A stretch of DNA of 64,000 nucleotides from Epiperipatus broadwayi (GCA_028023455.1 JAQFVV010000008.1:14508001-14572000); one strand, 5' to 3'; shown: positions 6,723 to 45,828, counted from the first letter of the stretch. The notes: a model not told the origin generated them from the sequence alone. Numbers and translations: made by a program.

Positions 6723-6955
6723 TAGTAAATAGAGGGATTTGAACTTAGGATGTTCAGTCTATATTGATCCTCGACTCTATCTCAAACAATGATATGCATG
6801 ATCTCATACACATGTGAAAAAGATAAATGATTCCTAATATATATATATATAGTTCATGCTGAACCAGCACTTGTCAGTTGGGCCATATATATATATATAT
6901 ATACAATCAGTGATCAGCTTATATTAAGATAGCAATTCCTTAAACTTTAATGGTC
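6723..6955 (-). mobile_element. Hammerhead-containing repeat (retrozyme-like), subfamily A copy 1
   Basis: Homologous to 7011-7253 (inverted) and 45581-45828; degenerate HHR at 6832-6884 (CTGACAA core, GAAC, (TA)n expansion in stem III). Confidence 0.8.
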
Positions 6956-7010
6956 ATTAAAACTATTGTTGTTTTTTTAGTGAAATGGATGGTTCAATTG
7001 GTGGAATAGT

Positions 7011-7253
7011 GAGAAGATTGAAGCCTGTTCATTAAAGTTTAAGGAATTGCTATCTTAATATAAGCCGAGCAATGATTGTATATATGTGTAGAAGATTATG
7101 ATCTGGCCCAACTGATGAGTGCTGGTTCAGCATGGAATACATATATTGGGGTTCATTTATCTTTTTCATATGTGTGTGATCATGTGTATCAGTTGTTTGA
7201 GATGGAGTAGATGGATATAGACTCAAAATCCTAAGTTCAAATATCTCTGGTAT
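7011..7253 (+). mobile_element. Hammerhead-containing repeat, subfamily A copy 2
   Basis: Inverted relative to copy 1; contains the HHR at 7107-7150 and A/B-box-like motifs at 7203-7245. Confidence 0.85.
7107..7150 (+). ncRNA. Minimal type I hammerhead ribozyme motif (A13G variant)
   Basis: CCCAA CTGATGA G TGCTG GTT CAGCA T GGAA TACATA T A TTGGG: stem I CCCAA/TTGGG, intact CTGATGA core, 5-bp stem II; GAAA mutated to GGAA. Confidence 0.85.
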
Positions 7254-9849
7254 AAATATTTTAATTATATATTTGTTTGTCATTGGTCAGTGTTCATAAA
7301 GTGCATGATTATTTGAAATAGGGTGCAGATTTAATCTTTCTTTTTTTTTTTTTTTTACTAAATTTGTTATTTGCATTTACAATTTCCTCTTCCATAATTC
7401 AAATTTTAGCGTAGAATTTTTTTGATTTGCATTATTACATTTTACATATATTATAAAAAGTGGAAATTATATATTTTATTCACCTAATATCTAATTCTGT
7501 TTATCCATTGATTTGAATTGCTTAATTGCTATATTTTTAAATAGTATATCAAAATAATAGACTATATTCTATTGTGAATTATATTTATTTAATTTTTTTT
7601 ATATGTAAATACATAATTTATAAAGTAATAAGTTTATAATATAAAAATTTGATAGTCAAACTTCTACATGCCTATAATGCTAATTATGTCCATTTAAACT
7701 TTAAATAGTACTAAATTGTAAGCATTATCAAATATTTTTATTTAATTCAATTTTTTATATTGCAAATGAAAAAATGTTTATTTTTATAGATAAAGTGATT
7801 TTTTAAAATAAATAAACATATACATAATTTAAAAATTCATGGTCATTCAACATTTTATATAAAAATGTGTTAATTATTAGTTCATTAATTGTATTATAAT
7901 TTGTCCACATGCTGATAATTTTCACACAATTCAGTTAGCCAAAAGCTTATAGTGTTTTTTAGTCTATGCCATTAAAATATTTTGATTGTTTTTGTAGTCC
8001 CTTACATTCTTTTTTTTCATATGTTATTATATTCAATTCTATTGTGATTCTTTCATGAGATTCATTTGGTATAGTATACTGTTACAATCTAGTTAAATTT
8101 TCTGACGGGATTCAAAGTATAATAGTTTTTTTTCACCATTTCATAGTCAATAGGATTCAACTGGAAGTGACTGCTTTTTTTATAATTCATTCCCTGTAAA
8201 TAAAATCTCTACTGGGCATTACCTTGTGGTCTTTTCTTTTTACCATAACTGGTCAAAAGAAAATCATGTATTTTAGATAGGCAAGTAATATCCATTTCTC
8301 TCCAACTCTGCCACATGTATTATGAGTTAGGCAATTGTACTTAGCAATTACCATAAAGGCAGTTATTATAAGTAGGTGTGTGTATATATATATATATATA
8401 TAACCTTTAATATCTTAGTCTGATAGCTATAAGTTAATTAACTGAATAAATGTATTTTTCAGTTCAGAACATATTATTTTTTATCAAAATAACATTAACC
8501 ATGTCAGGTGGTGATTAAAAGTAAAGGGTCTGCTTTACATGTATTAAGTTTTCTAAGGTTGCATGTGATATTGCCACAATTAAAACAAAATATATATGCC
8601 TCATAGCTAAATTTAAATTGGAAACTTATTAGAAATTTGAATTCAATATTTTTTGACATTTAGTTTTTATTTATTTATTTTTATATTTACAAAAGATATA
8701 ATTAATTGCATAATTATTTGGTGTGTGTGTTTGTATCAGAATTTTTTGAAAATTATTTTATTTTTTTAGCACTAAAAAAAAGAAGTTACATAGGGTTTAT
8801 CATTGTAAAATAAAATAAAAGACAAACAATGAAATATAATACTGCATTAAATATTGTAATCTAATAAGATTAATAAGTTAATAATAGATACTTAACAACC
8901 AGTTGTTTCATACATAAAGGACATTTATTGATTATTCTCATAAGATTTTTAATTGGAACAAAAAAAAAATTGTAGTAATTATTGGAAAAAGTAATATATA
9001 TTGATAAAAGTTGTAGACATATATATGTACCAGGTAAAAAAATATGTATTTGGTTACAAAACTTATTATTCTTATTTAAACACATACCATTTTTAAGTAT
9101 GATAGTTTAATAATTTTATTTGACATTTTAGGAAAATTATTTTTAATGTTTCAAGTTCATGACTAACTATTTAAGTTTCAGTACTGTATCTACTTGTTTT
9201 TTATTGTATTCTATCCTCAACCATATCCACCAAGTGAAAGCATTCAGTCCTATACAGCTTAAGAGAATTATTGAGATCATTTTTATCAAGTAAATATTTT
9301 TCAAATGGTTAATCTAATGAAAATCTATTTTTACAAATGAATTAATATTGAGCACCAGTAGTGATCCATCTGAAGAATTATATGAATGACTAGAAACTAT
9401 TTTTAACTAGAATTTCAGTTTTCTTTTTGCTTAGTAAAATTTTAAAATACATTAATATATGTGCAAATTGCAGCATGGATTTCTGAATATAGTGATACAA
9501 AATTAACTTACTTTTTTGTTTCATTTATTTTAAATTTTCTTTTATTATTTTATACTTTTTATGCTATTAAATTATATTTAAGGTACAAAATAATCTAATA
9601 TCGGGAAGAAAATGTGAGGAGCCCATTAAATGTTTAATGACTGGCTAAATTTTAGGATGAATTAGAATTCACTTAATTTTTTTTAAAATCTTGAATAAAT
9701 ACTCATTAAAATAATAATAATAATAGACTACAGTAAATAAATTAATATATATACATTTGAAAATAAAATTAATGAAAAAGTACATTAAAATAAATATATG
9801 TAAATTAACAATAATGTCTTGTTTCTATTTTGTCTTTTAAAGACTCTGT

Positions 9850-10559
9850 CAATGGTCAGCAACCGGTGGTTCGCAGACCACTGGTGGTCCATGTCATAAT
9901 TTTAATGGTCTGCAAAGAAATTCAGATATTATTTAAATTCGCTAAGCTCATTTAATAAAATTTTTAAATAAAAAATAAATTTTGTTTAAGCTGTAATATT
10001 ATAAGTAAAATAGAACAAGAACATTATATTGCTAATTGATTTGTTACAAAATACTACTGTGCCTTGCAAAATCTACCTCAAAAGCATTTAATTAACCCCT
10101 ACTTGATCAATGGTATAGAAAAAGTAACAAAATAAGAATACTGAATTCTGTACAATTGATTGACTAGGCACCAAATTTTATTATGGCAGACTCTTGGTAA
10201 TTGAATGAACTAAAACTCAAAAATTTTATTAAGAATTTTGAAGGAAAACATATCCATAAAAATTATTAAAGAATAGAATACTTTTTGTTATTAATCCTAA
10301 ATAATTTTTGTAGATATGAATTAGAAAATTACACATATAAAACATAACAAATATGTATTTATACATTCATTTATTTTTATGAAATAAAATGAACATTATA
10401 TTAACAAAAAACAAAATAAAACAATTCTTTAATAAATTATAAAACATATAAATATTACTATATAAATATATATGTATATCATACTCAATGCTCGTATTAA
10501 TTCATATCTTTAAAAATTATATTAATGGTCTGCAATATCTAAAAGGTTACCAACTGCTG
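9850..10559. mobile_element. hAT (Charlie-type) MITE, decayed
   Basis: Left end CAATGGTCAGCAACCGGTGGTTCGCAGACCACTGGTGGTCC; right end AAAAGGTTACCAACTGCTG; degenerate TSD ctctgt/ctctatgt. Confidence 0.7.
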
Positions 10560-11359
10560 CTCTATGTAACACTAAATCTTATTTCATGATTTATTTTAAA
10601 CAAGCAGAAGTGATAAGAAAACTACTAACCCCAAATAAGCTGGTATACTTTTAACAATTGAAATTAAAACTTTTCTAGAAAAAAAAAAACATTTGAATAA
10701 AATGATATGGAAGAAAAACTTATTAGTTAAAAATTTGTTTGAAACTATACTGATAATAAAATTATGCAAACATACATTATTGCAATATTCAATGCTCATA
10801 TTTAATGTTTATTTATAATTCCAGTAGCATGCTAGTACTTTGAAGTCATGGAAGATTTATATTAGACAGGATGAAAAGTGGTATTTAAAATCATTAATCT
10901 GAGAAAGCTGTGGAATCAAGGTCTCCATATTAAGTAACCAGTGTGACTTGTATATATAAATCTTACATAATAAATATTTTGTTCAGTATATCAAAATTCT
11001 TAATTATTTTCAGTGGTTTTTATACCTCTACTTTTAATAATATTTTATTATTTCTTTTGATATAACCAATGTATAGATCAATGCTTGTTAATGGATTTTT
11101 GCTTTCATCTAAGGCATAAGTTCTCATCATGTTAATTGTTTTTATGTTTTACATATTAAGAATTATTTTCTTCTTATGTTAACTGCAAGACAGCTTAATT
11201 TTAAGTAAGAATTTAGCTAAGTTAAACATAGTAAAAGATTTGTCTACATGAAATGATCATGTCAAAATTTAAGATAGTTTAATAATAATATAAATGTTTA
11301 ATCTTTATTAGGTGTAACTGTAAAAGAAAAAAAATACATTTTTCTTGTACAGTTTTATT

Positions 11360-11530
11360 TATTTTTTTAGCAAAACAAACAAGAAGGGATTAAGATCTTT
11401 AAAGTTGTTTATCAATTAATTAAAAAACAATAAAGGATTATAATCTTTATTTCTGAAGAAAATGAAAATTATCAATTAATTAAAAAAAAACAAGAAGAGA
11501 TTGGAATCTTTATCTTTAAAGAAATAAAAC
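11360..11530. repeat. Imperfect tandem repeat of about 60-bp units
   Basis: Recurring AAAACAA..GGATT..ATCTTTA and TTATCAATTAATTAAAAAA blocks. Confidence 0.55.
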
Positions 11531-12459
11531 TTGTTTTTAAATTAATGTATTTATAGATTTTTTTTTAAAAAGGTAATCTTTTTTGTAAAAAGAAAATCAA
11601 TTAGTTAAGGTTTAATGCATTAATTTCTGAGGTAGTCATGTGAATGAATGGAAGATTGATATCAGAGTTGTTTGTTGAAAAATAAATGAATGTATGGTCT
11701 GCAGAATTTAGTACTAGTAGGCTTCACCCATCAAAATCTCAGCTTGGAAGTCTGAAGCTAGATTAATCTCATTTATTTAAAAAAGAGAAATGATGTTTTA
11801 AAAGAGTGGTATAATATCATGGACTTTACAAGAACCATATACTAAGTTCTTGCTAAAGACTAACCATTACCAATCCAACTATGTAAGCAATTTCATTAAG
11901 AGGAATGTAGAAGCAACTATCCAGAATCATGGGTGTCTCACCTTATGTTAACTTGTTAAACTGGAAATCTGGAGCTACAAAATGAAAAGAAAAAAGCTAA
12001 ATGGAAGAATAATGAAATGAAAACAATTGTTAAACTGGAAACTTGGAGTTACAAAATGAAAAAGGTAAATTCACTAATGTAAAAAAGTATAACAAGAAAG
12101 GAAAAAACCTGGAGCCAGGAGATTGACCAAACTACTTCTACAAAATCTATCAAAGGAGTCATTCAACTATGCAACTATTAAAAAACTAAAAAAAGGAAAA
12201 AAATCCATGATAAAATGAGATATTGTAGGCTGTATACCTAATACATTTATAAATGTTATTTTATAAATGATGAATAATATTTTAATTGTTTTTGTTGAAA
12301 TATTTTTTTTATTTTTACTGAGTTAAAATGGTATGGGAACATCTTCATTTTCAAAATAAAAAGAAGAAGAAGGTTCAAGTTAAAGATAATCTTTTTTTCT
12401 TTATTGTAAAATAAATATATATTTGGGATTGATATTGTAAGAGAATAGCTCATGCATAC

Positions 12460-12660
12460 TAATAATTTTTATTAGTCATTTATTAGACTAGAGATTATTC
12501 AATAATGGATAATACATTAATTTCCACTATCTCATGTAAGGTAGGAACTGGTTTCTTTTTGCTGTTAACACCTTGTGGAGGGTTATAATTATTAACATGT
12601 GACCAAAGATGCATGAGAGCTGTGTAGTAAAATTCCACTACAGAAATATTATCAATAGCT
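12460..12660 (-). mobile_element. Retrozyme-family subfamily C fragment without ribozyme
   Basis: TTATTAGTCATTTATTAGACTAGAGATT and AAGGTAGG..TAACACCTTGTGGAGGG segments match the 22241-22740 unit. Confidence 0.65.
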
Positions 12661-16204: not shown

Positions 16205-16308
16205 TCTATATTTATATATAATTTATTAATATAGATAATTATGATTTATAGACATTTATTTTTTGCTTTTATATTTCAATTATATTTAATTATAATTTAT
16301 TGTTTTAG

Positions 16309-17021: not shown

Positions 17022-17079
17022 ACTTGTAAATTATGAAATAATTAGTTTTTTTGTTATATAGTATTAAAAACAAATTTAG

Positions 17080-17085
17080 AATAAA
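17080..17085 (+). terminator. Candidate polyadenylation signal AATAAA
   Basis: First AATAAA about 60 nt after the phosphoesterase stop codon. Confidence 0.45.
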
Positions 17086-18799
17086 TTGTATATAAGCATA
17101 AACATGCACTCCTGCTGGGCAGGTTGATAGTTTTTAATAATGACCAAACATTTAGTCTAAAAGCACAATAGTTATTAATTAATTAGTAAAAATATTATCA
17201 GCATTTGTTTTATGAGGTCTTTCTAATATTTCATTTGAGATTGGGAGTATACAACTTATATATAATTAGATATATGTTTGTGTGTTTACATAACCACATC
17301 TATAAAGAATTTGATTCCATGTGTTATCCGTCCATATGAGTGTGTATATTTATAATCCCAAATATATGAATCGTCAGATTTTTCTTTTCTAGGAAATAGT
17401 TAATTGTGATTAATTTGTATTTATTCAACACTTAATTGTCATAAAGTAGGTACATTGGAATTCTTATACTGGCATTGGGTTATGCATGGATGGCATGTAA
17501 TAGATAACTTAAAATTAATAGTAATATCTATATTCATGTACTAACACATGCACACACAAACATATATATGTACATCAGGATAATGAGTATTTTTTGAATT
17601 AATATATATGTATATTGATCTGCCTAAATGTTAGTTTTAGTGCAATGGAAGAATGTTAGACTCTGGGATATGAAATCCTGGAATTGATTTCAGTTCTGAT
17701 CCTTCTGATGTTTGAACTTTTTATGAACTCTTAAACAATAAGACCCGTCTATGATTTTTTATTTTATTTTTATAATTCATAATTAAAGTGATTTTTTAAT
17801 CAGCACACACTTATATATATTTGTAATGAACTAACACATAGAGAGTAATTATAAAAGTTATTCTACTTTCTAGTTAGGATTATTACTAGATTTTCAATTA
17901 TCTGATATTGGTTCTCCTTTAATATGAGGACATTAGTAGAAGCAAACATTTATATTAGCTTATATAATTTGATTAGTTTTGGCTAAATTTATCTTGTTGT
18001 TGTTATATGTGACTGACAAAGAAGTGTTCACAAAGCTATACTAATTCTCATTATTCGCATACGCAGGAGTACATGAAGAATGTTAGCAATGGGAGTAGAG
18101 AAATAATTGGTTAGTGTAAAATTCTTGACCAATTTGTAAATTGTTGAAATAGTTCAGCATAGTATATATGATTTACATTCTGGTTGGGTGGGGTTTTCTT
18201 TATTCACACAATAGAATTTAAGATTGAATTATAATTTTAATAGTAAAACTTAGCTTTTGTGAAGAAAGTAATTCAAATCAAATTATTTTTTTACATTAGA
18301 TTTAAATCATGTCTGAAATGATTATATGGAGTTCTATATGTAAAATGTTTAAGATTTTATTACAATTTAGTTTCTATTTTCAATTATTTTTGTTTATGTT
18401 TAGGCTATTTACTGTTTGTCGAAATTTGCAGGTTTTTTATTTGCCAGCTTCCATTGCATATTTATGTTTTTATTTATGATTACATTATCAGTTGGGATAA
18501 ATGCCATATAATACAGTCATCTTGTACATCTCACTATGAATTTTTTTAAAAAAGGTCTTTTGTAATTTTTCATTGAGATTTGTAATTACTATGTCCTGGC
18601 TGCAGCTGTTAATAAGACTGTATATATCAAGCATATAGAAATCATGTGACCAATTATTTTTTTTTAAATCTTAAAGCACTTCCTTTATAAGTTTAATTTA
18701 TTGATCCCATTAAAGATAAAACTATATGTGTGTGTATAAATTTTACAGAATAATGTACATTATCAAATTCATCACTTCCTTTATTTTGCAATAATATCT

Positions 18800-18870
18800 T
18801 ATTTCATTTCAATATCAGCCTTTCAAGCTAATTGAGCATGCACTTGAAAGGCTGATATTGGAATGAAATA
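18800..18870. repeat. 71-nt near-perfect hairpin (28-bp stem, 15-nt loop)
   Basis: TATTTCATTTCAATATCAGCCTTTCAAG ... CTTGAAAGGCTGATATTGGAATGAAATA with a single G-U pair. Confidence 0.85.
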
Positions 18871-19924
18871 TAATTGCAAGCTAGATAAAATATTTGCTTA
18901 TTTACTAATAATATCTTATATAAATACAATTTATCCATATTACTTTGAACATTTTTTTAGCAAAAAAAATTTTTTATTGGATATATGTACACACAATCTT
19001 ACATTTTGAATGTTGCGGTCTTCTTCATAACCACTCCTATTTAAGTGTTGTTTTTTTTTTTTTTTAAAAAATTAAAATAAGAGTGGCTCTGAAGAAAACT
19101 ACAGGACAGTCAAAAGTAATATTATGGATACATATATACAATAAAAAAATTTTTTTTACTAAAAAGTGTTCAAAGTAAGGTGGATAAATTGCATTTAAAT
19201 AATCAGCCCAATACTTAATAAGCACATTCTAGAATTCATTTTCATAGAATATATTTATATGTTTGCTGTTAACTGTTCTCCTGGAGTAATCAACATGTTG
19301 ATCTAGAATGATCCAGAAATTTATGTGTCTATTTATTGTTGTAATCTTAGTTAATTTAGTGACTACATAAATTATTGATGATTCTAACTGCATAAGCAAA
19401 AATAATAATATAGTCAAGTTTTAGTGTTTTTAATTTTAGGCAGTTGTACAATCTTTTTGTTCTCATTTCTTATCATCAACTTTAAATAATAATGTGATGT
19501 TTTTTTATATACCTTATAATTTATTATTATTGGTATTAAGATTAAAGTCAAATATTTTTATGTGTTCTTTAGTTATTTTATTATATTTATGCATTATACA
19601 CATGTAACCATATATTACATATATATTGGAGATAGTATAAGAATGTATATGTTTTAAACCCTTTAGTATCAATGCCCTTCTAAATACTCAGATGTGATAC
19701 ATTCTTTGCTACTTCACTTATTGCTTCTCTGCATACATACATATAAATATTTCAAATATATTTTCTATACTGAATATTGGTATTATTTTCTTTTTTTATA
19801 AAAAATTATTTTCTGAAATTTACCTTTTGTTAAATATTTTTCAAAAACTAGTTCTTTAAATCATTTATTAAAAGAGATTATTAGATAAATGTTTTAAAAC
19901 TTCCCTGCTTCCCACTTTCTTGAA

Positions 19925-20225
19925 ATCTATGAATAATGACATCTGAAAAAGATAAGTGATCTCAGGATACATTTTATGCTGAACCAGCATTCTTCACTTA
20001 GTTCATATGTAATCTTTTACACCTGTATTTATCATTTATTCAGTATTTGTCAATATAAAATGATTACAATTTGATTTATAAAAATTATTCAGTTAAATAC
20101 ATTAATGAGTATTACTAATTATTTATTAGGCTAGAGATTCTTATATCTTTCATAGCTGAGAGATAAATTTTAAATCCAACTTAAAGATTAATATATGTTT
20201 TTAATTAAATATAAACACATTAGCC
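19925..20225 (-). mobile_element. Hammerhead-containing repeat, subfamily B monomer
   Basis: Degenerate HHR at 19961-20003 (GTGAAGA A TGCTG GTT CAGCA T AAAA TGTA TC); flanks match the 29.9-31.5 kb array. Confidence 0.75.
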
Positions 20226-22240: not shown

Positions 22241-22740
22241 TTTTTATTAGTCATTCATTAGACTAGAGATTATCCATTTAATGAATAATATTTCTGTACC
22301 ACAAGATCTTAAAAGCAGATAGAAAACAATCCCTACCTTGCAGGAGATTGATATAGTGATAATTACACTACAAAATATTATTTATTAAGTGGAGAATCTC
22401 TGGTCTAATGAATGACTAATAAAAACTAGTAATATACTTACATCAAAATGGTCTGTGTCAAAATTGTGAGGGCAGTAAATTTGACAAATCAATTAAATGT
22501 ATTAATTAGCTATCTATATATACTGAACAATGATGTAAGAGATTGTAAAGGCCAACTGAAGAGTGCTGGTTCAGCATGAAATGTGCAACTTGGGGATCAT
22601 ACATTTTTAAAATATATTTTTGGACATAGGTTTATGATTACACCCCTTCACAAGATGTTAAAAGTGGATAGAAACCACTCCCTACCTTGTGTGAGAGAGG
22701 TGTAATGAAAAAAACTACACTACAGAAATATTCATTAAGT
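22241..22740 (+). mobile_element. Hammerhead-containing repeat, subfamily C: about 349-bp monomer with terminal redundancy and an inverted arm
   Basis: CCCTACCTTG..ACTACA..ATATT..ATTAAGT repeats at 22331 and 22680; HHR 22552-22593 (CCAA CTGAAGA G TGCTG GTT CAGCA T GAAA TGTGCA A C TTGG); 22241-22299 is an inverted copy of 22367-22425. Confidence 0.85.
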
Positions 22741-22939: not shown

Positions 22940-23135
22940 TAATTACTATTATTTCATTTTATGAGTATCAAACTTCCTGCACTCATATCTTTAGACAAAT
23001 AAATTAGTGATTATTACTAATTATTTATTAGGTTAGAGATTATCATATTACTAACTCAAAAGAGAAATGGTTCAGCATGATATGCATCTTGGCGATCATT
23101 TACTTTTTTTTCAGACGTCTTTATTCATATGTTTC
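22940..23135. mobile_element. Rearranged subfamily B fragments with 3' half of the HHR
   Basis: 22940-23050 matches the monomer body; 23069-23094 GGTTCAGCATGATATGCATCTTGGCG is the ribozyme 3' half in the opposite orientation. Confidence 0.7.
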
Positions 23136-23199
23136 AAGAATATGTGATGAATGGGAATTTTAAATATATCTAAAAAAGAGAAAATTTATATATATATAT

Positions 23200-23379
23200 A
23201 ATATTTTAAATGCCTCATAGCTATATTCTTTCTGCCAGACTGCCACTTTAAATAAAGAAAATCTTGAATTTTGCAGCCCATTCCAAAGAATTCCTTTTGA
23301 ATGGGCTGCTAAATTCAAGTTTTTCTTTATTTAAAGGAGTGTAGCTGAAAGAATATAGCTATAGGCCATTTAAAATATT
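23200..23379. mobile_element. Fold-back (MITE-like) element next to (TA)n
   Basis: About 85-bp imperfect arms (ATAGCTATATTCTTTC..GCAGCCCATTC / GAATGGGCTGC..GAAAGAATATAGCTAT) with a very short loop. Confidence 0.75.
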
Positions 23380-23851
23380 TTATATAGATTTCAATTAGCA
23401 TTATACATTGTTAACATATATATATATCAAACCATATCATTATTTTATAAAATGTAACTTTTGCAACAATCTAAATAAAGTAATTAAACAGGCAAAACTC
23501 TCCATACAGTAGATGGTGATCATGTGATGTCTAAATAAAGTAAAAGAAGAAAGCAGTTTTTTTTACTAGTTTAAATATTTCCATGTTCATAGAGTAAAAA
23601 AGAATTTTAAAAAAATTAAAGAAATGCTTTTATTTATAGAAATGTACTAAAAAGTAAAAAATCCTTTTTCTTTAGTTTTGACAGTATTCTTGGTATTATG
23701 TGACCAGAAATAAAAGTATGGGGCAATTGTGTTTAGAAATAGTCTTAACTATAAGTTCTATTAATTTTTATAGGCTTATTATTAAAGAAGAATTACAATT
23801 TGCTATTAATAATGTATATGAAAAAAATATCTAATTTTTATTTATCTAAAA

Positions 23852-25054
23852 CAGTGGCCTTCAAACACTGGTCCGCATACCACACTGGGCCACAAAAATT
23901 TTCTGCCGGTCCATGCAAGACTGGCAAGAAAGTTTGTAATAACAAAATAATAAGATTTTTAAACTTTTAATTAATATAAACAATTTTTATTTATTTTTTC
24001 TTCGCATTTTTACCCGATTAAAAAAAAAAAAGAAACAGAACAAAATCTAATCAATCATACATGAGTAAATTTGTTTTTCTATTTATCACAGTGTTTATGG
24101 GTGCTAGAAAAAAGTATTTTATTATATAAACTCCGTTTGTCTTTTGATAGCCAATCATGGCCATTTGTCAGCGTTGTTAAAACAATAAAATGTAACGTGA
24201 CTTTTTTTGATCTCTTAAATTTTTTCTACTCTCTCTTTTAATATTTTATTTTTAGTGTTTTTTTTTTTTTTTTGTCTATACGACGATTTTTTTTTTTTTG
24301 GCTTTAACTTTTATTTTTGAAATCAATTTCTATTAGCTTTTTTAAAAAATAAAAACCAAAAAATAAGTTCTGTCTCTAACTTTTACAAAGTATTTCTCAA
24401 TACACCCCCACCACCCCAAAATAAAGTAAGATCAAAACTTTTGACTTTTTCAAGTTTCAGGGGTTTTTTTTTGTTTAAAAATACAGCCACTTTTTTTTTT
24501 TAGCCTATAAGGCGATATCTTTTTTGCCTTTATTTGTATATCGCTAAAATACTAAAACTTTTATTTTTAAAACCAATTTCAGTTACCGTTTTTTAAAAAT
24601 AAAATCAAAAAATAACTTTGGTCTTTATCTTTTGTCTCAGTGATGACAAAGTATTTCTCAACCCACTCCCTCCTCCCCCCCAAAAAAAAATTAAGATCAA
24701 AACTTTTGACTTTTTTAATATTCATGTGAATAATATTTTATTCTTGCATGTTTTAACAATGAAATAATAAACATAGAAATGCAAGCATATTAATGAAAAT
24801 GATTGTTATTGTATTGTTTTCTGTAGCAGTATGACTGCGCAACTCGAGAAAGAGTGTTCAGCATGTGAAGGTAAGTAACACCATTACAATACACAATAAC
24901 TAATGTGCTATTTTGGTCAGTTATAACAATTATGCTTATCTAAGGCTAAGCAGGTTACATCTTTAAGAAAATTTACCTGTAAACTTCTGCCAGTCCGCAA
25001 AAGCTTATCCTTATTTTTGCCGGTTCGCAGGCATGAAAAAGTTGAAGACCACTG
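23852..25054. mobile_element. hAT MITE (CAGTGGTCTTCAA family), long copy with an internal tandem duplication of about 240 bp
   Basis: TIRs CAGTGGCCTTCAA / TTGAAGACCACTG; 8-bp TSD ATCTAAAA / ATCTAAAG; homologous to 30195-30709 and 53811-54410. Confidence 0.9.
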
Positions 25055-25991
25055 ATCTAAAGTATGACTAAGAATATTTCAAAACAAGAACACTGCATAT
25101 TTTTATTTTTAGTTACATAATACCAAGAATACATGAAAGTTGTAAAAAAATTACTTTTTACTTTTTTAGTTCACTTATATATATAAATTATATATATATT
25201 ATTTTCTACTTTTTAGTATTTTTAAAATGTTAATAAAATTTTATATTTTAATATGAAAAATTTAAAGTTTTTGCTAAAATTGTTTATAAACTTTAAAAAT
25301 GTATTGCCATTGGGAATACATATGTATGCAAAATTTCTAGATTGGAAATTAGAAAATGATTGACAAATTAAGTTGTAAGATTTTATCTAGACAGAAAGAT
25401 TAAAAAACAAATTAAGCTAAATAAAATATATAAAAAGAAAATAGTTACATTTAGCTGTTTATTTAAATAGTCAAATTTTTGTGTGCTTTTACTGTAATCA
25501 ATAGATAATTTACAGTTCATTATTTCTTATGCAGGTTTTTTTTTTTCAATTAACCATATACAAACAATTCATTTTCTTGTTAGAAATAATTAATAATGAA
25601 AGTAAAATTTAAATTTTTTTACCAAATTTGCTACCATGAAGAATGTTAATAGCCAAATTCCAAATTGCTTTCATTGCTAACTAACTTTTGCTATCTGTTG
25701 TCAATAAAATTTAATATTTCTTTTTTAATAAATAATGTTAATTTTTATTCAACATTGTTTTGAAATATGATTGCAAATTTCTACTTCTTAGCAGCAATTA
25801 AAATTAGTATTATAACAATTCAGGCATTAGTATTTTTCATGAATCTTAGATGAGATGAGGATCAAAGCTACTTAGTTGACTTTTTTAATCTTTATTATAT
25901 TATTAACTAATAAAAATTTATCTCAAGAAAATTTGATCACATGATTTTCTTTTCTCTCAGCAGTCATATTCATAAATTTCTTTAGAAGCTT

Positions 25992-29869: not shown

Positions 29870-31470
29870 GCTGATTAGTCATATCCATTGATATAAAATA
29901 TAACTTTCCATGTCATCACATATACTTTAATCACATTAACAAAGATATCTGAAAAAGATAAATAATCCTTAAGATACATTTAATGCTGAACCTGCACTTT
30001 TCAGTTGGTGCCGGTCACAATCTTTCAAATTCCTTATTCTCGCTCAATATCAAATTACTACAATTTAATCTAATGGTGCCAAACTTCTTGCACTCACAAT
30101 TATGCACTATCCCCAAGATAAATACTTAATGATTAGTGTTAACTATTTGTTAGATATAAACTTTAATTAAAGATTAATATATTCATTAATATTCCAGTGT
30201 TCTTCAATCCTTGATCCGCGGACTGGTGCCGGGCTGCAGAAGTTTTTTACCGGTCCTCTTGTAGACTGTTGGGAAAGGTAATAACAAAATAATAAAAGTT
30301 TAAACTTTTAATTAATATAAACAATTTTTATTTATTTTTTCATCTCATTTTTACCCAATTAAAAAAAAAGAAACAGAACAAAAACAAAATCTAATCAATC
30401 ATACATAAATTAATTTGTTTTTCTAATTATCACAGATGTTTATGGAGGAGGGGGGGAGGTAGAATTAAATTTTTTATGACTTTTCTAAAAAAATTCAAAC
30501 AAAAAAGTTTTTATTATACAATTATATATATATATAACTGCATTTTGTATCTTTAACATTGTTGTTTTGATCAGTTATAACAATTGTGCTCATCTAAAGG
30601 ATATGCAGTTCACATCTTTAAGAAAATTTATTTATAGACTTCTGCTGGTCCGCAAAACCTTATCCTTATTTTTACCGGTCCGCAGGTGTGAAAAGGTTGA
30701 AGACCACTGAGCTAGACCATATGGAGTAATTAATTCAATTCCATAGCAGTTTTTCCCATATGTTATCTCTTGAATATACTTACATTTTCCATTTTGTCAT
30801 GTATACTTTATTCATATGAATAAAGATATCCGAAAAAGTTAAATGAGTCCCCAGGATGCATTTCATGCTAAAACAGCATTCATCAATTGGGTCAGATCAC
30901 ATTACAATTTCTCATATTTTTTATTATTTTTTCTTAATATCAAATTGTTATAATTTAAAATTGCCAAATCTCTAGCACTTACAACTATGATACACTCCTC
31001 CTACCCAACCCATGGATAAATGCATAATGATTATTATATAATGAAAATACATACAGAAGAGGTGAAAGGAAAAGAAAAAAAATTAGTAACAACTGAATTA
31101 TAATGATTATTAGTAATTATTAATTAGGTTAGAAATTTTCTAAATTCAAGTATAAACTTTAATTAAAGATTAATGTATCAATATTAAACACAACCACATA
31201 GAATGATTAATTTTACTGTTTCATATTTTTTTCATCCATAATTATTTAAATACACTTATAACTTTCCATTTTCTTACATATGCTTACATCACATGATTAA
31301 AGACATTTGAAGAAAAATAAAATGGGCTCCCAAGATGATTTCATGCTGAATTCTTCAGTTGGCCCAGGTTATAATGTTTCATATGTCTTAATCTGCTGTC
31401 CTTAATATTTATTAATATCAAATTATTACAAATTTAACTTAAAAGTTCAAACTTCCCACAATCACTACTA
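29870..31470 (-). mobile_element. Tandem array of three hammerhead-containing monomers (subfamily B), interrupted by a hAT MITE
   Basis: HHRs at 29967-30008, 30850-30891 and 31329-31362; shared blocks TAAAGATATCTGAAAAAG, AATATCAAATT..TGCCAAA, TATAAACTTTAATTAAAGATTAAT recur in register. Confidence 0.85.
30195..30709. mobile_element. hAT MITE (CAGTGGTCTTCAA family), short copy
   Basis: TIRs CAGTGTTCTTCAA / TTGAAGACCACTG; colinear with 23852-25054 minus the internal duplication; no TSD match. Confidence 0.85.
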
Positions 31471-31639
31471 TGGCATGTGAAAAGTTGTAACCAGGATTAA
31501 CTGAAGAGTACTGGAGATCACTTTTTGTTTTGAAATGTCTATATTTACATAATTAAATTATATGTGATGAAGTGGAAAATTATATTTAAGATGTTTCACA
31601 TAGAAAAAAAAAAGGAATAATTATTTTTTGTGATTGTGT

Positions 31640-31785
31640 TTAATATTAATAGATATATTTATCTTTAATTAAAATTTACATCTGGACTTAGATGTCAATT
31701 TTTAGTTTAATAAATGATTATTTGTATCTGGGGAAATGTAGTTGTGAGTACAATAAATTTGACACCTTTAGATTAAATTGTAATA
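31640..31785 (+). mobile_element. Inverted subfamily B monomer fragment
   Basis: Reverse complement of about 30060-30190 (TTAATTAAAGAT, CCCCA.GATA, CTCACAA, CAATTTAATCTAA). Confidence 0.7.
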
Positions 31786-32399: not shown

Positions 32400-35300
32400 T
32401 AATTTGTCATTTTTGGAAAATATCAGAGATATTAAAAATCTAGACTTGTTATAAAATAATTGGAAATTGCAATAATATTGGCAGTTCAAAAAGACATTTG
32501 AGGCTCTGAAATAAATCATAAAGTCAAAAAGGCCTTGAATGCTTTTTTGAAAAAACACTATTCCTGTAATTTCCAATTGTTTTATAACAAGTCTAGATGG
32601 ATATTTATATTAAAATTGGAAAATTATTAAAATATAAAAGAGTTGTTGATAAATTTGGATATGGATTTGTAAATGAAAGAATACATTGACTTAAGGAATA
32701 TATATAAAAAAAAAATCTATTATGAAAAATTTAGAAAAATCCAAAGCAGAAAATAATATGTAAACAACAGATGAAGGTACAATAGAAAGTAGAATAAATT
32801 TTAATCAAAGGAATGTTCTCGATAGATATAACACAGGAAGTGATAACTAAATAGTGTGCTAGAAAAACAAAAGCTATTAAAAAGATACAATATTAACATT
32901 TGTTATTCCTGATCTCCAAAAATATTCCAGCAAATTTAAACTAGAATTTGCAGATCATATTAAATATTAAAAGACTTTCATAGTGGCTTAAGCTTAAATG
33001 AATTCAATAAGGAGATAATTGGCACTGTATTAAGCACAGCTTCACAGACATCTGTTATAAAAAAACAGCAATTTACCTGTAAATTTTCAACAGACAATCC
33101 AATATATATTTAAAAAAAAAAGGAATATGAAAATATTTTTAAATGATTTTTTAGGATAATAAAATATTTGGAAATATGTGAAATAGTATGAAAAAGAGTT
33201 AAAAGTGTTAAAAGAAAATAAAACTGAAGAAGTAAAAAAAAACTATAGAAGATAAAAATGTTAATACAGCATCTTGTTGCTGGGAAGAAGTTATAAGAGC
33301 AGTAAGAAGTTGAATATCATGTAATGGGTGGAAAATTTCTACAAAGAATTATGTGATAACAGAAAAAAAAAAATCCTTCAATTACAATCAGTATTTTCTG
33401 TAATGCTATGAGACACAATCTATGAAAAGTGAAGAGAATTTCTTGTGAGAGGATTTATTATTGACATCTTAAAAATAAATGAAGAAATAAAGAAATTGAA
33501 AGTTATTAAATATTTAACCAAAAATATATTATGAAGAATGCAATAATCATATGGATCTTTAAAAAAAGATGGCAAAGAAAATATTAGAAATTACTGACGT
33601 CAATTCTCTACAGTATAATTACAACTCACAGATATCTTTGGACTCTAAACCATTCAAAAGAACAAGCTAAGTTTAAAAATAGTTTTTCACAAAAAGGACT
33701 AATAAGTGTAAGTTACTATTTTTTTTTTATTAAAGTAATGACTTTATTATTGTTACAAATGTATAAGAGGGATACATTGCTATAAAAGTAATTATAAAGA
33801 TTGTCCTCCAATGACTAAAAATAGTCTTGGCATCTTTCCTATGTCACGATTGTATTTTCATAAAAGTTCAACCTTGCAATCATTGCCCGTTCAGCTATTC
33901 TTTTGTTCATTAGCTAGTTGTTTTTGGATAAGTCTCAATCTAACATTTACATAGTTACTGTCATATTTGTCGGTGCCAGCTCTTCCTCTTTCCTATTTTA
34001 TTTATTTAGATTGATCATTTCCCATGTCAGCCTGAAGGTCATCTAGGGTGCATGAGTTGGTCATGAGTTTTTGTCTTGTTTAGTTTCTTCCTATAAGATT
34101 GGTATAGAGCCATGCTGTTAGGGTTGTACACTGCTTCACATCTTGTAAGCCACAGGTTGAAGTTACTATTATGCACTGAATTTACAGATTATGAAAAAGC
34201 ATTTGAGTCTAAGACAAATAATTTTTCAAATTATGAAGAACATTCATCAAATTGCAAGGCCAATGACCAATCTACTTGGTGATACTTTAAAAATTAGCTT
34301 TGGTAAGTGTGGATTTCATGATTTCAATCTCCAAAAACTTTTACAGCAGAAGGAAAAAATATTTGTGGTTTGTTTAGAAAAAGAAATGTATAGTTTAAAA
34401 AAATGAAAAAGTTTGGGGAGAAAAGAAGTAAATAAGTGTAGTGTATATATAATATAGTATATGTAAAAAATGTATTTATAAATTGTTTTTTTTTTTTTTT
34501 GTGATAGGGATAGATACATTTTTATGTTTTTATTTTGTTTTTAATTGTATTGATAATTGTAAAGATCTAAATATGTATTTTGTAGATCCTTGAAAATAAC
34601 TACAAATAAGGTGGTTGAAACATTGGATGTGGTAAACAAATAAATGTATATATATGATGATGGAAAAAATAGTTTTTTGGGGAAAAAAGGAGAGTATATA
34701 TATTTTTGATTATATTTTTTGATTGGATTTAGTGAAAAAGAGCATTATACTTTATAAGTTATATATATTTTTAAAGGGGAAAAGGTGTGTGCTGTTGGTA
34801 AAAAAGTTTTAATGGTGGTGATAAAAAGTAAAATATATTTTGAAATAAAATTAATAGAGATTACTTTAGATCATTTACAGATAATATGCTATTTTTTAAA
34901 ATAATGTATTGGAGCTTCAAGATCTATTGCAAGAGTTATTGGATAAAAGTAGAATTAAAAATAAATGTTAAAAAGACTATAGTAATGTTCAATTACTTCA
35001 TCAACAAATAATAAATTAGAAGTAGTTATAAACTTAAAATATTTTGGTCTAATTATCAATAACAGATTGTGTTAAAAATTAATAATAAAGTTAAACTGGA
35101 TGAAATATTTTTTAGTAAAAATAATTATTAAAAAAATGTCTATCTCTCTTTGAAAAGGAAGATTTTACATATGTATGTAATAGTATTTAAGTGAAGATAA
35201 TTCGTATATTTCATATTACGTGGTGAGAAGTGTATGTTCAGAAATACATGAAGAGTTGAAAAAAAAAATGAACAAACAAATTTCATTGTTATTATTATTA

Positions 35301-38800: not shown

Positions 38801-39179
38801 ATAATTAAATTAAAAATATTTCTTGCTACTAATTAAAGAATTGAACACTGGATTTATAGATAATGAGTATATATTAGTTGCATTGAACACTTGTAAATCT
38901 GTAGAAACAACTGGTTGCTTACATTAGATAGAATGTGAATCCATGTGAATGTTTATTCTACATGTGGCAATATTAGTAATTAACTTATCAACAAAATATA
39001 ACATATAAATTATTAACCTGTTAATTGAAATTCAAACCATCATTAAATCTTATCAAAATATTAAATGCAATGTCCTTTTTCATGTTACTACATATACAAC
39101 TTGTAATTTTAATCCAAACTCAAATAAACCAACTACCTCCATAAGCTATGGATAAATATTTATCCATTAACAAACAAGA

Positions 39180-40600: not shown

Positions 40601-43600
40601 TGACAAATTTAAATGATTTTTCGTTTTTATATTGAATTTTTATGAAATTGAGTGAAGATACAGTTTATAATATACACAATTTTTCGCAATAACTTCAGTT
40701 GGAATAATTAATTATATGGCAATATATATATTGCTTATAAAGTAAAATACCATTAAAGCAATAAAGTTTAGTAAATATGGTAACTTTAGTAAACATTGTA
40801 CTTGGGTGATTATTCTTGAATTTAGATTTTCATAAGTAAGATTTAAAATTGAAATGTTTAGTAATAGTTTAAATAAATTCATTATAAAATTAAGAATAAA
40901 AATATATCAAAAAATTAAATAATAGAATAGTGTACAATTATAAATAAGTTAATAAAGGAATCCCAGATGGGATTCTACAAACAAAGACATTTCCCATTTC
41001 TATGATCTAATCTTTTTCACAGTACAATCCACACGTTTCTAAAGGGCAGTTCATGTATTGTCTATAGGTTTGGTCATCCCAATGTTCCAGCATCTTTTTC
41101 TTTTATTCCCATGATGAGCAGTTATCTATGAACTATAGTCTGCAAAAAGCTCAGTTTCTGTTGTAAATTAATATACAATATAAGCTAAATTGTAACTGCC
41201 AAATAAAGGGTGAAGAGTGTAATATATTGTCACAAGCAAGCTAGTATAGAAATCCAGACAGATTTTACAAATAGTAGAATATGTTTTGCACCTGTACAGT
41301 CCAATTTTATTGGCAGTTGGGCATGATAGCGTATGCCGTTTTTTTCTTTTGTTTCATTCTCATGATAAGTATATAACTATGCAACTATCTTGTAGAAGGA
41401 CCATTTATTACAGTAGAGGTATGTGGCATTGTGCTGCTGTTGTAGATTAGTGGATAAGCTAAGTAAAAGTTGTAATTGCAATATGTATGTAGAATTCATA
41501 TATATAAATAGCTGCAGAGATATTAGGATATATAGTACATCTTTGATATAATTATCTTTTTTTTTTCATTTCAGTAAGCAAAAGATAACATCTAACATGC
41601 TTCACTTTTCCTGGTGAGAATAAAATGGTTTTCAGAAAGGAATATAATTTTTTTCTGTTAATAAATATTTATTTAAAATAATGTTGCTAAATTATACGCC
41701 GAAAATCCAAATTATCTGTTACTCAGTAAAACACACATAACATTTACATAAATTGCCAGATAACTTCTCAATGCAATTGTTTCATCCTCTGAAAAAAAAG
41801 TAACTGCGAAATAATAATTCATCAACATTTTGATGAATTCAAATCTTACCATAAAAAAAAAAATGTTACAAAAGGAAAATTAAAATATTTATTATAATTC
41901 TTGACTATTTGTGGGTGCTAGACTTATGCTACTGATAGGATTCATAAATAACAGATTATGGAATGACTTTCTAACATGAGAGTAAGAAATGCTAACTATG
42001 ATAATGAGATTACAAATTTGGGAAATCATATTTTTACGCTTTGATTACATGCACAGCAATTTTAATCAATTGTAGGGATAAATTTAATAGATTGGGAAAC
42101 CTGAGTTTTCTTAAATTGGATTTGGAGATAATTTTAATTTGGCAAAGACTGTATACTTTAGAGATATCTATTTAAGAGTCTAAAAACAGTCTATTTCACA
42201 TAACCTGGAAAATCTCTCATTAAAGCAGTAGAAATAGTTGTAAAAACAATAATGGTAATGTTGATAAAGCAGGAATTAGTCACACTAATAATGTGAAGTA
42301 TTTTAACATGAATTTTTAAAAATATAGTTACATGAGATATGCACAGTTTGCATTTTATGATCTGATTGGAATACAATACCACGGCTTAGAAGCTATAAAG
42401 ATATAAGATTGGTATAGCTGCTCTTAGTCAAATTCATTTTACTAGAAGAAGGAAATTTTACTTAGATAGATGACTGCATATTTTTGCATTAAAGAAACCA
42501 GATATGATTTAGTGTCAGATCTAATTTGATATATTTTATTTTTGGAATTTTAGATGTGTTGCTGAAAAGCTAATATTATCAGAACATATATTTTACAGCG
42601 ATATCTGAGCCTATTTTAATAGTACATATGCTCTACAATTTTATTAAAACAGTTTAAAGAACTTTTATTTCTTGATGGATAATATTATTACATTATACAA
42701 ATTACTATATTTATTTATTTATTTTTGAGATTTGAATGCATATGGTGATAGAAACAATATATTTTGATCTGAAAAGTTTTTATGCAATAAAAGATCTACT
42801 GTAATTGAATTTTGGAACAATACACATATTGTTACAAACAGTTTGTTTATGTAGAAAACTCATTATAAAGTAACTTGAAAGCACACATGTTCAAAACAGA
42901 TTATTATATCCCAGTAATAGTTACGTTTAAAAGTAAATCATTTTGATGGTATTCATATGAAATTTGATGTTTGCTGAAGTATCTAATTTATCATCCATTA
43001 AACACTTAAATACCACTTTGAATTTTTAAGATTGACATGTTATTGAAAGAGAGAATTTTCTTAGGAAGTAGATTATCGTTAAAATTAAATTTGTTCTCCG
43101 GTTTACTAAAAAGCATTCTGATGGATTCTCTGATATTCATTTTAATATATCAAAGGGAAATGCCAGACTCCCACTTATCAGAATATTACCATTTATAGGA
43201 AAGTTTAAAAATGATTGGTGGATTAAAACTGCAAGATAATATAGCCTTCTGTTTGTTGTTATTTTAGATCCCTTTTTTTTATATACAATTGAAAGGTGTG
43301 ATCCTGAAAACTAAATCTGTGAATGGAACATTTTAACATGATATTTTGAACAAGTGAAGGGAGTGTAAAATGAGTCAAAATACATGAACGTTTAAAATAG
43401 GGTAATCTTATGTTAGTTTCAAAATAATTGAAATTTTTTAAGAAAAGAAAACACTATAGAAAATGATTTAAAGAATGATGTGGACTTCCTCTCTAAATGA
43501 ATAATGTTTTTAAAAAATGGAGAAATATTTTAGATATGTTTTTGTTATCACACAAATGCAAAAAAATGATTCGAGAAGTAGTTTAATTTATATACTGTGC

Positions 43601-44850
43601 TTATTGATTTATATAAGGTATTTGGCTCAATTAAGTGAAGAAGAAAAATTATTTGGTAGTCCATTGAAGTTTCATTTTATGTAACTTTTATGTAATTGTT
43701 GAAAGAGAGCTTTATTGTTTATAACAAAAATCTGAAATGTTTAAGATGAAAACTGGTATTAAATAAGAATATGTACTAGCATCAGTTTTCGGTGGGTTTT
43801 TTTTTTTTTTTTGCGTGACAGTGGTTTTTAGAACTGTTCGTGGGAAGCTTTATGAAGCAGGCATCAAAAGTTTGTTGGTAGAGCTTTTAAATAAGTTCTT
43901 CATCATGGGTTTTAAATTTATAATATACTGATGATTATGTTACTCTTATAAATTTAAAAGTTGATCTACAGAATGTATTTAATGTTTTGAATACAATCTA
44001 AGTAATTTAGTAATTAAGTGCAAGAAACTAAAATTCTTTATCAGTCAGAGGAAAAGAATCTCAATAATTTTTAGTTTGAGTGGTTATTGACTTGACAGTG
44101 GGAGTCAATTTAAATATCTTGTCCATTATTTAGATAGAACGTGGATTTAAATGATGAATTGAAGTTTTCAATATATTACTTTTGTACTTAAATTAGATTC
44201 ATTATTTCATCATAGCAATATAAATAGTACAACTAAATTGTTTTTTAAGGGCTATTATTTTGCCTAATTTATTTTAAAGATTTATGTTATAAAGTAATAT
44301 ACATGCATCATATAAATTTTTTTAGAGGGTGAATGTACCATTTTAAAAATGTGATAATAAGTTCATCAGTATGTTCTTCAGCATCCAACAAGCAGTAGAA
44401 CATTCTGAAAATCTATTATTGTAAAGGTATATCTCTGTTTGACTGCCATTTGAAGTGAACAAATACTACAATAAGGTTTAAGCATTTTATGGTGAACTGG
44501 AACACAGTTTTTAGGGAGAAATGATCTATTTACATTAGGAAGATTATCTTAAGGATACTTTAAAGAGTATAATATGATTGTTTTCACTGGAAAAGTAGAG
44601 CTGAGAATATACAATGGAAAAATCCTAATTATGCAAAGTGTTGAAGTATTTCAAAAGATAATTTTTGTAGAAAAAAGTTAAAAGACAGCATCATAAGATA
44701 AATAGATAGACTAAAGATGTGACAGAAGTGGTTGCATTTTCGTTACAAACTCATTTTTATTATATTTTTTCTTTCAGTTTTTTTTTCTCTTTTGGAGACA
44801 AAATGACAGTGCTCATAATTAAAAAATAAAGAAATTATTTACAACAGTAT

Positions 44851-44942
44851 TTTTTTCCCCCATATGTCATAGCATCAGCTGGGAGCGAACTCGCAACAAC
44901 TGTCAGGCAGCTGCACTGACCTCTTAGCTAACAACGCTTGAC
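44851..44942 (-). mobile_element. 92-bp tRNA-derived retrocopy / very short SINE
   Basis: A-box TAGCTAAGAGG, B-box-like GAGTTCGCTCC, A6 tail, flanked by exact 11-bp TSD TACAACAGTAT (44840-44850, 44943-44953); cloverleaf imperfect. Confidence 0.7.
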
Positions 44943-45580
44943 TACAACAGTATGACAAGACACAAAAAGTAATATAAGTAAAAATTTACCAAAAATGAAA
45001 GATAATGAAAAGATAAAAAAAGACTATCACTATTAGAATATCAGTAATGAATGACAATAACTTTATAAAACCTCTGGAGAATCTTTCCAATAGTAGGAAT
45101 CTCTTAGGATTTTTTTTAATAATGTTTGTCAAAACGTGCATATTTCACAAAACTTCTAAGCTAAATAAAACAATTTCATATGAAATTTGCACCATTTCAA
45201 AATAATTGGAATTAAAAACAAGCAAACTTAAAATGTTCACAATAAAGTGGTTTAAAATTAGCATTTAGATAAATAAATATTTTTGTTTTTGTGTGTTTCA
45301 GCATTTTAGTACAATTGTTTAATACTAAGAAACAGTTCTTTTCATCCTATTCTAGACCCATCTACTATAAGCAGTCAAAAATTTTACATTCCCAAACTAG
45401 AATCGATTGTTTATGTTTTCCAACTCAGGATTCAAAGCTGGAAATGATGCCATTATTTATGTAATACCCATCTTTTACTCTTTAATTCCATTTAAGATAA
45501 TAAGCAGAAATTTAAAAAAAAGATTTGAATACATTACAATTCATTTGCATAGTTTTAGAATTTTAAAACTATAGAAATTG

Positions 45581-45828
45581 TACTAAATAGAAGGACTTGA
45601 ACTTAGGATTTTCAGTCTATATTCATCCTCCAGTATATCTTAAACAAGTAATACACATGATCACACATATGTGAAAAAGATAAATGATCCCCAGTATATG
45701 TATTTCATGCACAACCAGCACTCATCAGTTGGACCAGATCATAATCTCCCACACATATATACAATCGATGCTCTGCTTATATTAAGATAGCAATTCTTTA
45801 AACTTTAATGGATGGGCTTCAATCTTCT
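45581..45828 (-). mobile_element. Hammerhead-containing repeat, subfamily A copy 3
   Basis: Colinear with 7011-7253 over about 250 bp with nearly the same boundaries. Confidence 0.85.
45690..45733 (-). ncRNA. Minimal type I hammerhead ribozyme with intact catalytic core
   Basis: TCCAA CTGATGA G TGCTG GTT GTGCA T GAAA TACATA T A CTGGG: CTGATGA, GAAA and UA cleavage site intact; mismatches in stems I and II. Confidence 0.8.

Follow-up and report, generated by a model that had tools for sequence, protein, structure and literature searches.

What kind of repeat carries the nine short motifs that lie scattered over one stretch of the Epiperipatus broadwayi genome, and are these motifs hammerhead ribozymes (HHRs)? 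The stretch, which we call the window, is the 64,000-nt segment JAQFVV010000008.1:14508001-14572000 of assembly GCA_028023455.1 (5.6 Gb, 18,588 contigs), and the A+T content around the motifs is locally 74%. A previous reading made from the DNA alone (the sequence-only reading) had described nine ribozyme copies of an abundant, retrozyme-like family with about three subfamilies. Our analysis leads us to a related view, to which we give a probability of roughly 0.8. The nine motifs would be decayed insertions of short, AT-rich, non-coding retroelements of ~407-470 nt per unit, each unit carrying one dimer-type type I HHR, and these elements would depend on Penelope-like elements (PLEs).

Nine copies of one motif in an abundant repeat

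The window was searched with a 26-nt core pattern, CTGAWGAGTGCTGGTTCAGCATGAAA, which comprises CUGAWGA, helix II and GAAA. With up to three mismatches allowed, six of the nine sites were matched, where dinucleotide-preserving shuffles of the window gave an expectation of 0.00. The remaining three sites (the half copy at 23069+, and those at 30850- and 31329-) hold a more damaged motif and were recovered by inspection of the sequence and with nhmmer, run with models of two families, A and B; these models retrieve all nine window copies. All nine motifs exist where the sequence-only reading had placed them, as mutated copies of one repeat superfamily. In place of the roughly three subfamilies proposed there, two related families, A and B, give the better description; the supposed third, at 22552+, aligns to family B.

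We then counted the motif across the whole assembly. The core pattern, with up to two mismatches, matches 113,968 times compared to 0 for the reversed pattern used as control. The matches are distributed equally over the two strands and occur on all large contigs. With this count and with the non-coding units described below, an abundant non-coding repeat family carrying the motif is supported. For closer reading we took 30 loci around perfect cores and 190 kb of arbitrarily placed sequence. Families A and B make up 1.85% of the latter, in 13 elements. A relaxed descriptor found 50 HHR motifs in the 344 kb read in all, belonging to at least eight unrelated sequence types, compared to 1 in the reversed control; evidently the genome repeatedly maintains this architecture. 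A strict descriptor of the type I HHR (at least 4 bp in helix I and 3 bp in helix II, together with CUGANGA, GAAA, U16.1 and H17) identified intact copies at other loci and returned 0 matches when the 190-kb random sample was reversed.

Type I hammerhead anatomy and the palindromic helix III

The consensus of the motif contains the full anatomy of a type I hammerhead, the fold that the sequence-only reading had assigned to it. The core C3 U4 G5 A6 N7 G8 A9 ... G12 A13 A14 is complete in the consensus and also in thousands of exact genomic copies. Helix I is made up of 4 bp with a 4-bp distal extension and helix II of 6 bp with a GUU loop, and helix III is reduced to the pair A15.1-U16.1 around a palindrome. 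In family B helix III reads AUGCAU and H17 is C; in family A the palindrome is longer, AUACGUAU, and H17 is A. The predicted cut after H17 would fall behind ...AUGCAUC in family B and ...AUACGUAUA in family A. The family A palindrome is seen today as ACGT, ATGT or ACAT, forms that probably trace back to an ancestral AUACGUAU. The sequence of helix III differs between the families, yet it is self-complementary in both. The consensus of the sequence-only reading, with helix III as A-UGCA-U and C17, agrees with the family B form, and copies with an intact CpG have C and not T before GAAA.

The comparison between the families is the informative one, and it supports an HHR. From CCAA to GAAAU the consensus sequences of A and B are identical at 31 of 31 positions, compared to 57-62% upstream and 53% downstream. 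In contigs from sequencing runs of three organisms the k-mer depth on the HHR core is 10-50 times that of the flanks, and loose ends run into differing flanks; the core is therefore the part common to the families and to related species. Distal stem I comes in three versions: 8 copies have AAUC/GAUU, 6 have GAUC/GAUC and 3 have GACC/GGUC. Each is fully complementary, implying two compensatory double changes.

The pairing was further measured in an alignment, A1, whose rows were chosen on the core and helix II only, so that helices I and III are unbiased. In this alignment 90.3% of cells are paired, compared to 23-46% with the partners slid, and two pairs change on both sides: 1-55, which is GC in 23 cases and AU in 9, and 3-53, which is UA in 31 and CG in 5. 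The covariation of stem I across subfamilies is clear. Helix II is paired in 97.4% of cells and helix I in 91% proximally and 85% distally, A15.1-U16.1 is A-U in 40 of 45 distinct rows, and the topology is that of an open-ended type I. Taken together these results support a type I hammerhead in which helix III is minimal and palindromic, a class that would be expected to act as a dimer.

The core also records how the copies decayed. Among exact 26-mers in the genome, 3,857 end in CACGAAA, 7,008 in CATGAAA and 3,683 in CACAAAA. Both products of CpG decay are abundant, and the ancestral sequence therefore most likely had a C11.1-G12 CpG, which gives the canonical G10.1-C11.1 pair. The commoner G-U form would be explained at least partly by CpG decay, since the complementary product, G12>A, is present in 3,683 copies. 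It is also possible that some master copies carried the G-U form.

Units and insertion footprint

Family A (the motifs at 6832-, 7107+ and 45690-) has a unit of 434-471 nt, slightly above the published range of 150-450 bp; in family B, to which the other six belong, the unit measures 407 nt. The units are non-coding, with a longest open reading frame (ORF) of 58-98 aa in the dimer and a GC content of 0.29-0.31, and they are without long terminal repeats (LTRs), the primer-binding site and polypurine tract not having been specifically searched for. At locus L015 the copy is 1.35 units long and its two HHRs are exactly 407 nt apart. The first 100 CpG-intact cores listed include at least five same-strand pairs 406-414 nt apart, for example at 26475802-26476233 of contig C1.

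The nhmmer model positions show that the 5' starts of the copies vary continuously and that the 3' ends cluster, ~113 nt past the cleavage site in family A and ~80 nt past it in family B. No poly(A) or LINE-like tails (LINE, long interspersed nuclear element) were seen at the 3' ends. A (TA)4 or longer tract follows 7 of 30 3' ends (23%), compared to a background of 5% (P=5e-4). Head-to-head copies are common. In the window the twin arms at 6729-6956(-) and 6975-7245(+) have their 3' ends facing outward, and inverted 5' pieces occur at loci L012, L015 and L018. Partial tandems are frequent among young copies and the window has one array of three units on the same strand; most sampled copies are solo, truncated or inverted. 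Tandem retrozyme arrays are not the usual form of the family, most copies being dispersed, 5'-truncated or head-to-head insertions. In published PLE insertions the 5' end is strongly truncated, partial tandems form pseudo-LTRs, an inverted 5'-truncated copy lies alongside, a tail of 30-40 bp is present and microsatellites are favoured (PMC8557442). Judged from genomic sequence, the insertion anatomy of the A and B copies matches this footprint.

We also considered whether the repeat could be a satellite amplified at the DNA level, by unequal crossing-over or rolling-circle amplification, whose hammerhead is incidental; newt satellite 2 was originally described in such terms. The same-strand array at 29905-31474 is what such an origin would leave behind. 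The bulk of the copies, which are dispersed, solo and 5'-truncated with a common 3' end, or head-to-head, carry the mark of retrotransposition instead, and the motif is spread over all large contigs and evenly over both strands. We therefore regard a satellite origin as remote. Within the array the distance from unit 1 to unit 2 is 883 nt and from unit 2 to unit 3 479 nt, the former because an unrelated repeat has inserted at ~30299-30714. This repeat, of ~400 bp (30299-30714), has further copies at 23958-24091 and 24942-25059 that are 86-95% similar.

Two further observations concern the 3' end of family A. A second cluster of ends lies 33-45 nt beyond the main one and could correspond to the published 30-40-bp PLE 'tail'. 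A tRNA-like reading of this end, through its GTTCAAATCC box, was rejected: at default settings ARAGORN reports no tRNA in the window or in the consensus, and at a relaxed threshold its only hit falls over the HHR and was read as spurious.

A Penelope-like neighbour as candidate mobiliser

Outside the A and B copies the window carries a head-to-head twin of a PLE 3' end, with an endonuclease-like ORF and a minimal HHR of its own in the right arm (Table 1). The left-arm HHR of this twin has G12>A at a former CpG. The same PLE-like element is present at locus L030, where an upstream reverse transcriptase (RT) fragment has a YVDD motif. Genome-wide, a first look gave 72,530 candidates for the PLE-like ORF; the 150 that were scored are ~95% identical, with frames of up to 810 aa. 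HHR-bearing elements of this young PLE-like family therefore co-occur with the A/B family both in the window and in the genome. The one line of support for assigning the ORF to PLEs comes from its language-model look-alikes, which are eukaryotic clusters with RVT_1, GIY-YIG and HTH_animal domains. An RT joined to a GIY-YIG endonuclease is the domain combination typical of PLEs.

The HHR of the window PLE shares the minimal architecture of the A and B motif but has a U3-A8 core and another helix II, and the window PLE family is therefore not the sequence parent of A and B. It could, however, act on them in trans. Elsewhere in the sample, L038:3903-4704(+) encodes a second, diverged PLE-like RT that is ~37-48% identical to the L030 fragment, and in the same 10-kb stretch L038:9886-9928(+) is a canonical C3-G8 minimal hammerhead of another sequence type.

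A closer relationship to PLEs should also be weighed, namely that the copies are 3'-terminal pseudo-LTR fragments of an unsampled autonomous PLE, to which the HHR would belong. The footprint is PLE-like in its extreme 5' truncation, partial tandems and inverted arms, the HHR lies ~100 nt from the 3' end as it does in the window PLE, and a preprint (10.64898/2026.07.22.740005) relates retrozymes to pseudo-LTRs. Copies longer than one unit, however, repeat the 407-470-nt non-coding sequence and do not run on into coding sequence for RT or endonuclease (EN), and the dimer offers no ORF longer than the 58-98 aa given above. In the 344 kb, moreover, RT or EN matches are never next to an A or B copy; the sole exception, at L030, lies across a (TA)n junction. 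We consider this explanation unlikely and retain the view of separate non-coding elements that depend on PLEs.

Points against and a competing fold

A number of results weigh against hammerhead retroelements mobilised by PLEs, beginning with the state of the window copies. The strict descriptor gives 0 matches in the window because all copies there are mutated. In 8 of the 9 the conserved core is broken by point mutations or deletions; the ninth, at 45690-, has an intact core and damaged helices. The window copies are relics of ribozymes and not ribozymes, and so of the nine ribozyme copies first described the motifs stand, each with a defect in core or stem and none intact.

The covariance models that the sequence-only reading had recommended were equally silent. 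The hammerhead models of Rfam 15 (Hammerhead_1 and its clan) give no match at the gathering score or at E<=10 in 40 kb, in 1.65 kb or in a 161-nt sequence with a perfect core, and the scans returned only weak chance matches resembling microRNAs (miRNAs) and small nucleolar RNAs. Published PLE-type HHRs were found by structure descriptors (RNAmotif) and not by Rfam models (PMC8557442; PMC4209133). It is probable that the minimal helix III costs Rfam score.

Folding of the isolated motif is also unfavourable. For the 57-59-nt sequence the minimum-energy fold is a hairpin of CUGGNCCA with UGGUUCAG, at -12.6 kcal/mol compared to ~-2 kcal/mol for the hammerhead pairing. The folding z-score of the isolated motif is not significant, and thermodynamics supports neither an isolated HHR nor a double hammerhead. 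In the competing hairpin the 5' strand of stem I (CUGGNCCA) pairs with a segment of helix II and loop 2 (UGGUUCAG). This is the minimum-energy structure in both families (L015:1482-1538(-) and L020:1482-1538(-)), and the pairing survives an A-U to G-U change. On these models the hairpin could be a conformational switch that keeps monomeric circles uncut. Folded as a circle, the family B unit forms helix II and reaches -90.1 kcal/mol, where dinucleotide shuffles give -73.2 +/- 4.9 (z=-3.45); a decayed family A unit has no excess folding (z=-0.16).

Within the families, the HHR is 81% identical to the consensus and the flanks 80-82%. The sequence-only reading had proposed that a core no better conserved than its flanks would speak against a ribozyme, and taken literally these figures do so. 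The yardstick is ill-suited to dead retro-copies, in which decay of the core at the rate of the flanks is expected, and such decay is not evidence against function in the master copies. At the RNA level, none of the sequencing runs that contain the element is recorded as RNA, and the contigs from these runs give no evidence of transcription, cleavage-site ends, strands or circles.

The remaining points concern the mobilising enzyme. The RT fragment matches Pfam RVT_1 at E=0.009, below the cut-off. Pfam finds nothing in the window ORFs or in the endonuclease-like ORF, GIY-YIG included, and a word-indexed protein homology search gives nothing at E<=1e-5. The assignment of the protein to PLEs is accordingly soft. 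No autonomous PLE with the exact A/B HHR is present in the 344 kb read.

Several of these results would suit a repeat similar to short interspersed nuclear elements (SINEs) or miniature inverted-repeat transposable elements (MITEs), in which the hammerhead-like string is due to chance or is a non-catalytic relic, and which is moved by LINE or DNA-transposon machinery. The silence of the Rfam hammerhead models, the thermodynamic preference for the competing hairpin and the equal decay of core and flanks within a family all fit such a repeat, and at first glance the twin arms at 6729-7245 could be taken for a foldback element or MITE. Chance is difficult to reconcile, however, with a full descriptor that finds nothing in the reversed control sequence checked, with a core that is 100% identical between families whose flanks are ~60% identical, with compensatory changes in stem I, or with a helix III that is palindromic throughout. 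The 3' ends are free of poly(A) and LINE-like tails, ARAGORN finds no tRNA at default settings, and the 5' ends are variable where fixed terminal inverted repeats would be expected. A SINE- or MITE-like origin is in our view very unlikely, and hammerhead retroelements that depend on PLEs remain the reading we prefer.

A possible route of mobilisation

Under the preferred reading, transcripts of several units would bring two hammerheads together. Their palindromic helix III segments (AUGCAU in B, AUACGUAU in A) would pair, and each ribozyme would cut after H17. RNA of unit length would be released, which cellular tRNA ligase can circularise (PMC7229834). A PLE RT with its GIY-YIG endonuclease, supplied in trans, may then take multimeric or circular RNA as template and, beginning at a fixed 3' site, copy it into nicked DNA. 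The insertion ends lie away from the cleavage site and some copies exceed one unit; the template would therefore not be the cut linear monomer, and an uncut multimer or a circle read from a fixed start is indicated. It is possible to go further and to see in the A and B insertions clean evidence of how retrozymes are copied, with Penelope-type machinery starting at a fixed internal position on circular or multimeric RNA and the hairpin possibly serving as a switch. We regard this stronger version as rather doubtful.

Comparison with known hammerhead repeats

Descriptions of high-copy non-coding repeats that are associated with PLEs and carry type I HHRs with a minimal, palindromic helix III go back to 2014-2020 (PMC4209133, PMC7229834), and the same architecture and footprint are published (PMC4209133, PMC7229834, PMC7761336, PMC8557442, bioRxiv 10.64898/2026.07.22.740005). 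The comparators named in the sequence-only reading, non-LTR retrozymes, newt satellite 2 with the axolotl HHRs, and Sm-alpha, were well chosen (PMC7229834, PMC4209133). The A and B elements are a further case of the known animal retrozymes linked to PLEs and nothing categorically new. The differences from known systems are of degree: the copies are dispersed and not in long tandems, the unit is slightly longer, and helix II is PLE-like. A text search of the literature for the core sequence string returned no paper, which carries little weight as sequences are usually given in figures.

Like the animal non-LTR retrozymes (PMC7229834), A and B are non-coding, low-GC repeats of a few hundred bp with one type I HHR each and ~10^5 copies, and they co-occur with PLEs. 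Some retrozyme HHRs need dimers, and the circle is predicted to be highly self-paired, as is that of family B. Unlike them, the A and B copies are dispersed, 5'-truncated, 1-1.4 units long or head-to-head, and do not form long tandem arrays; their unit of 407-470 nt is at or above the published range; they are known here through the genome only; and helix II, with 6 bp and a 3-nt loop, is PLE-like and not the canonical 4 bp with loop-loop contacts. The animal non-LTR retrozyme units reported are 170-400 nt long, and the axolotl has 126,247 HHR motifs (PMC7229834; Li, Clavereau & Pollet 2026 preprint).

With the PLE hammerheads (PMC4209133; Lunse, Weinberg & Breaker 2017, as relayed in PMC7761336) the A/B motif shares a long helix II, a short helix I, G10.1-C11.1 and a palindromic helix III or loop 3. 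In both, the motif also lies ~100 nt from the 3' end of the element, two motifs can occur on opposite strands at a distance of 100-700 bp, and action as dimers is expected. The A/B motif differs from the PLE hammerheads in that the A and B units have no RT or EN ORF and that no nucleotide is bulged between A9 and 10.1. In family B a palindromic tetraloop caps the one A-U pair of helix III, the same design as that described for the axolotl HHR_Amex1, which cleaves well only as a dimer. The sequence is nevertheless unrelated to HHR_Amex1 and newt satellite 2, and the amphibian repeats are tandem arrays of ~330-350 bp with canonical loop 1-loop 2 contacts.

The SINE-like Sm-alpha of Schistosoma is also a short retroelement that occurs dispersed in high copy number and carries a type I HHR. 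Its helix III is stable, and it has Pol III boxes. A and B, unlike Sm-alpha, are without a confirmed tRNA-derived head (ARAGORN negative at default settings).

If the reading is correct, and given that the genome is that of an invertebrate, the copy number, with at least 1.1e5 cores that are nearly intact and, by extrapolation from the 190 kb, perhaps 3-4e5 fragments, would rival the axolotl record. The A/B family would explain a large class of the repeats annotated as 'unknown' in Epiperipatus broadwayi, which annotation based on Rfam misses. The footprint bears on the question of which enzyme, and which form of the RNA, circle or multimer, mobilise animal retrozymes.

Features of the window

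The copies, their HHR relics and the PLE twin are listed in Table 1.

Table 1. Hammerhead-bearing copies and the Penelope-like twin in the window. Core matches are those of the 26-nt pattern search; model positions refer to the nhmmer family models.
Feature	Position	Strand	Core match	Remarks
Family A copy, left arm of head-to-head twin	6729..6956	-		5'-truncated, 3' end outward; model positions 154-382; also core search, inverted repeats
HHR relic in 6729..6956	~6832-6892	-	6852-6877(-)	G8>A, A15.1>C, (TA)n expansions
Family A copy, right arm of twin	6975..7245	+		Model positions 103-376, E=6e-46
HHR relic in 6975..7245	7100-7150	+	7112-7137(+)	A13>G (GGAA for GAAA)
Family B copy, old	19900..20170	-		Family B model positions 8-309
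HHR relic in 19900..20170	~19958-20010	-	19972-19997(-)	C3>G, G10.1>A, G12>A
Family B-like copy	22392..22630	+		Family B model positions 28-257, E=1.7e-14
HHR relic in 22392..22630	22544-22600	+	22556-22581(+)	26-nt core with 0 mismatches; helix III insertion and U16.1>A
Family B 'half' copy, 5'-truncated or decayed	23060..23172	+		Starts inside HHR, 5' half lost; A13>U
Family B, unit 1 of three-unit same-strand array	29905..30148	-	29979-30004(-)	HHR relic ~29962-30016; G8>A, G12>U; core match, direct repeats
Family B, unit 2 of array	30790..31035	-		HHR relic ~30845-30898; C3>U, helix II and stem I changes
Family B, unit 3 of array	31289..31474	-		HHR relic ~31325-31370; 6-nt helix II deletion
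Inverted HHR-less arm beside 5' end of array, head-to-head	31516..31785	+		Inverted repeats and one direct repeat
Family A copy, solo, 5'-truncated	45592..45828	-		Model positions 140-376, E=2.5e-41; 90% inverted match to 7012-7203
HHR relic in 45592..45828	45686-45740	-	45703-45728(-)	Core intact; helix II (CA>GT) and stem I (U>C) damaged
Head-to-head twin of PLE 3' end, outside A/B family	56563..57585			(TA)n on both sides
Endonuclease-like ORF in PLE twin	56771-57052	-		Reads ...YIGES...RIKEH...
Minimal HHR of PLE twin, right arm	57492-57534	+		U3-A8 core; single A-U pair around palindromic GUAC; helix II unlike A/B

The window also contains long, near-perfect hairpins or inverted repeats that are MITE-like, at 18795-18875, 18916-19202, 23183-23396 and 32438-32598, with weak chance matches to plant and animal miRNAs in Rfam. 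A weaker hammerhead candidate, A3-U8, is present at 6011-6054(+). At 34586-34628(+), absent from the sequence-only reading, we observed an unrelated hammerhead-like motif with a U3-A8 core, a 6-bp helix II and a 2-nt palindromic helix III loop.

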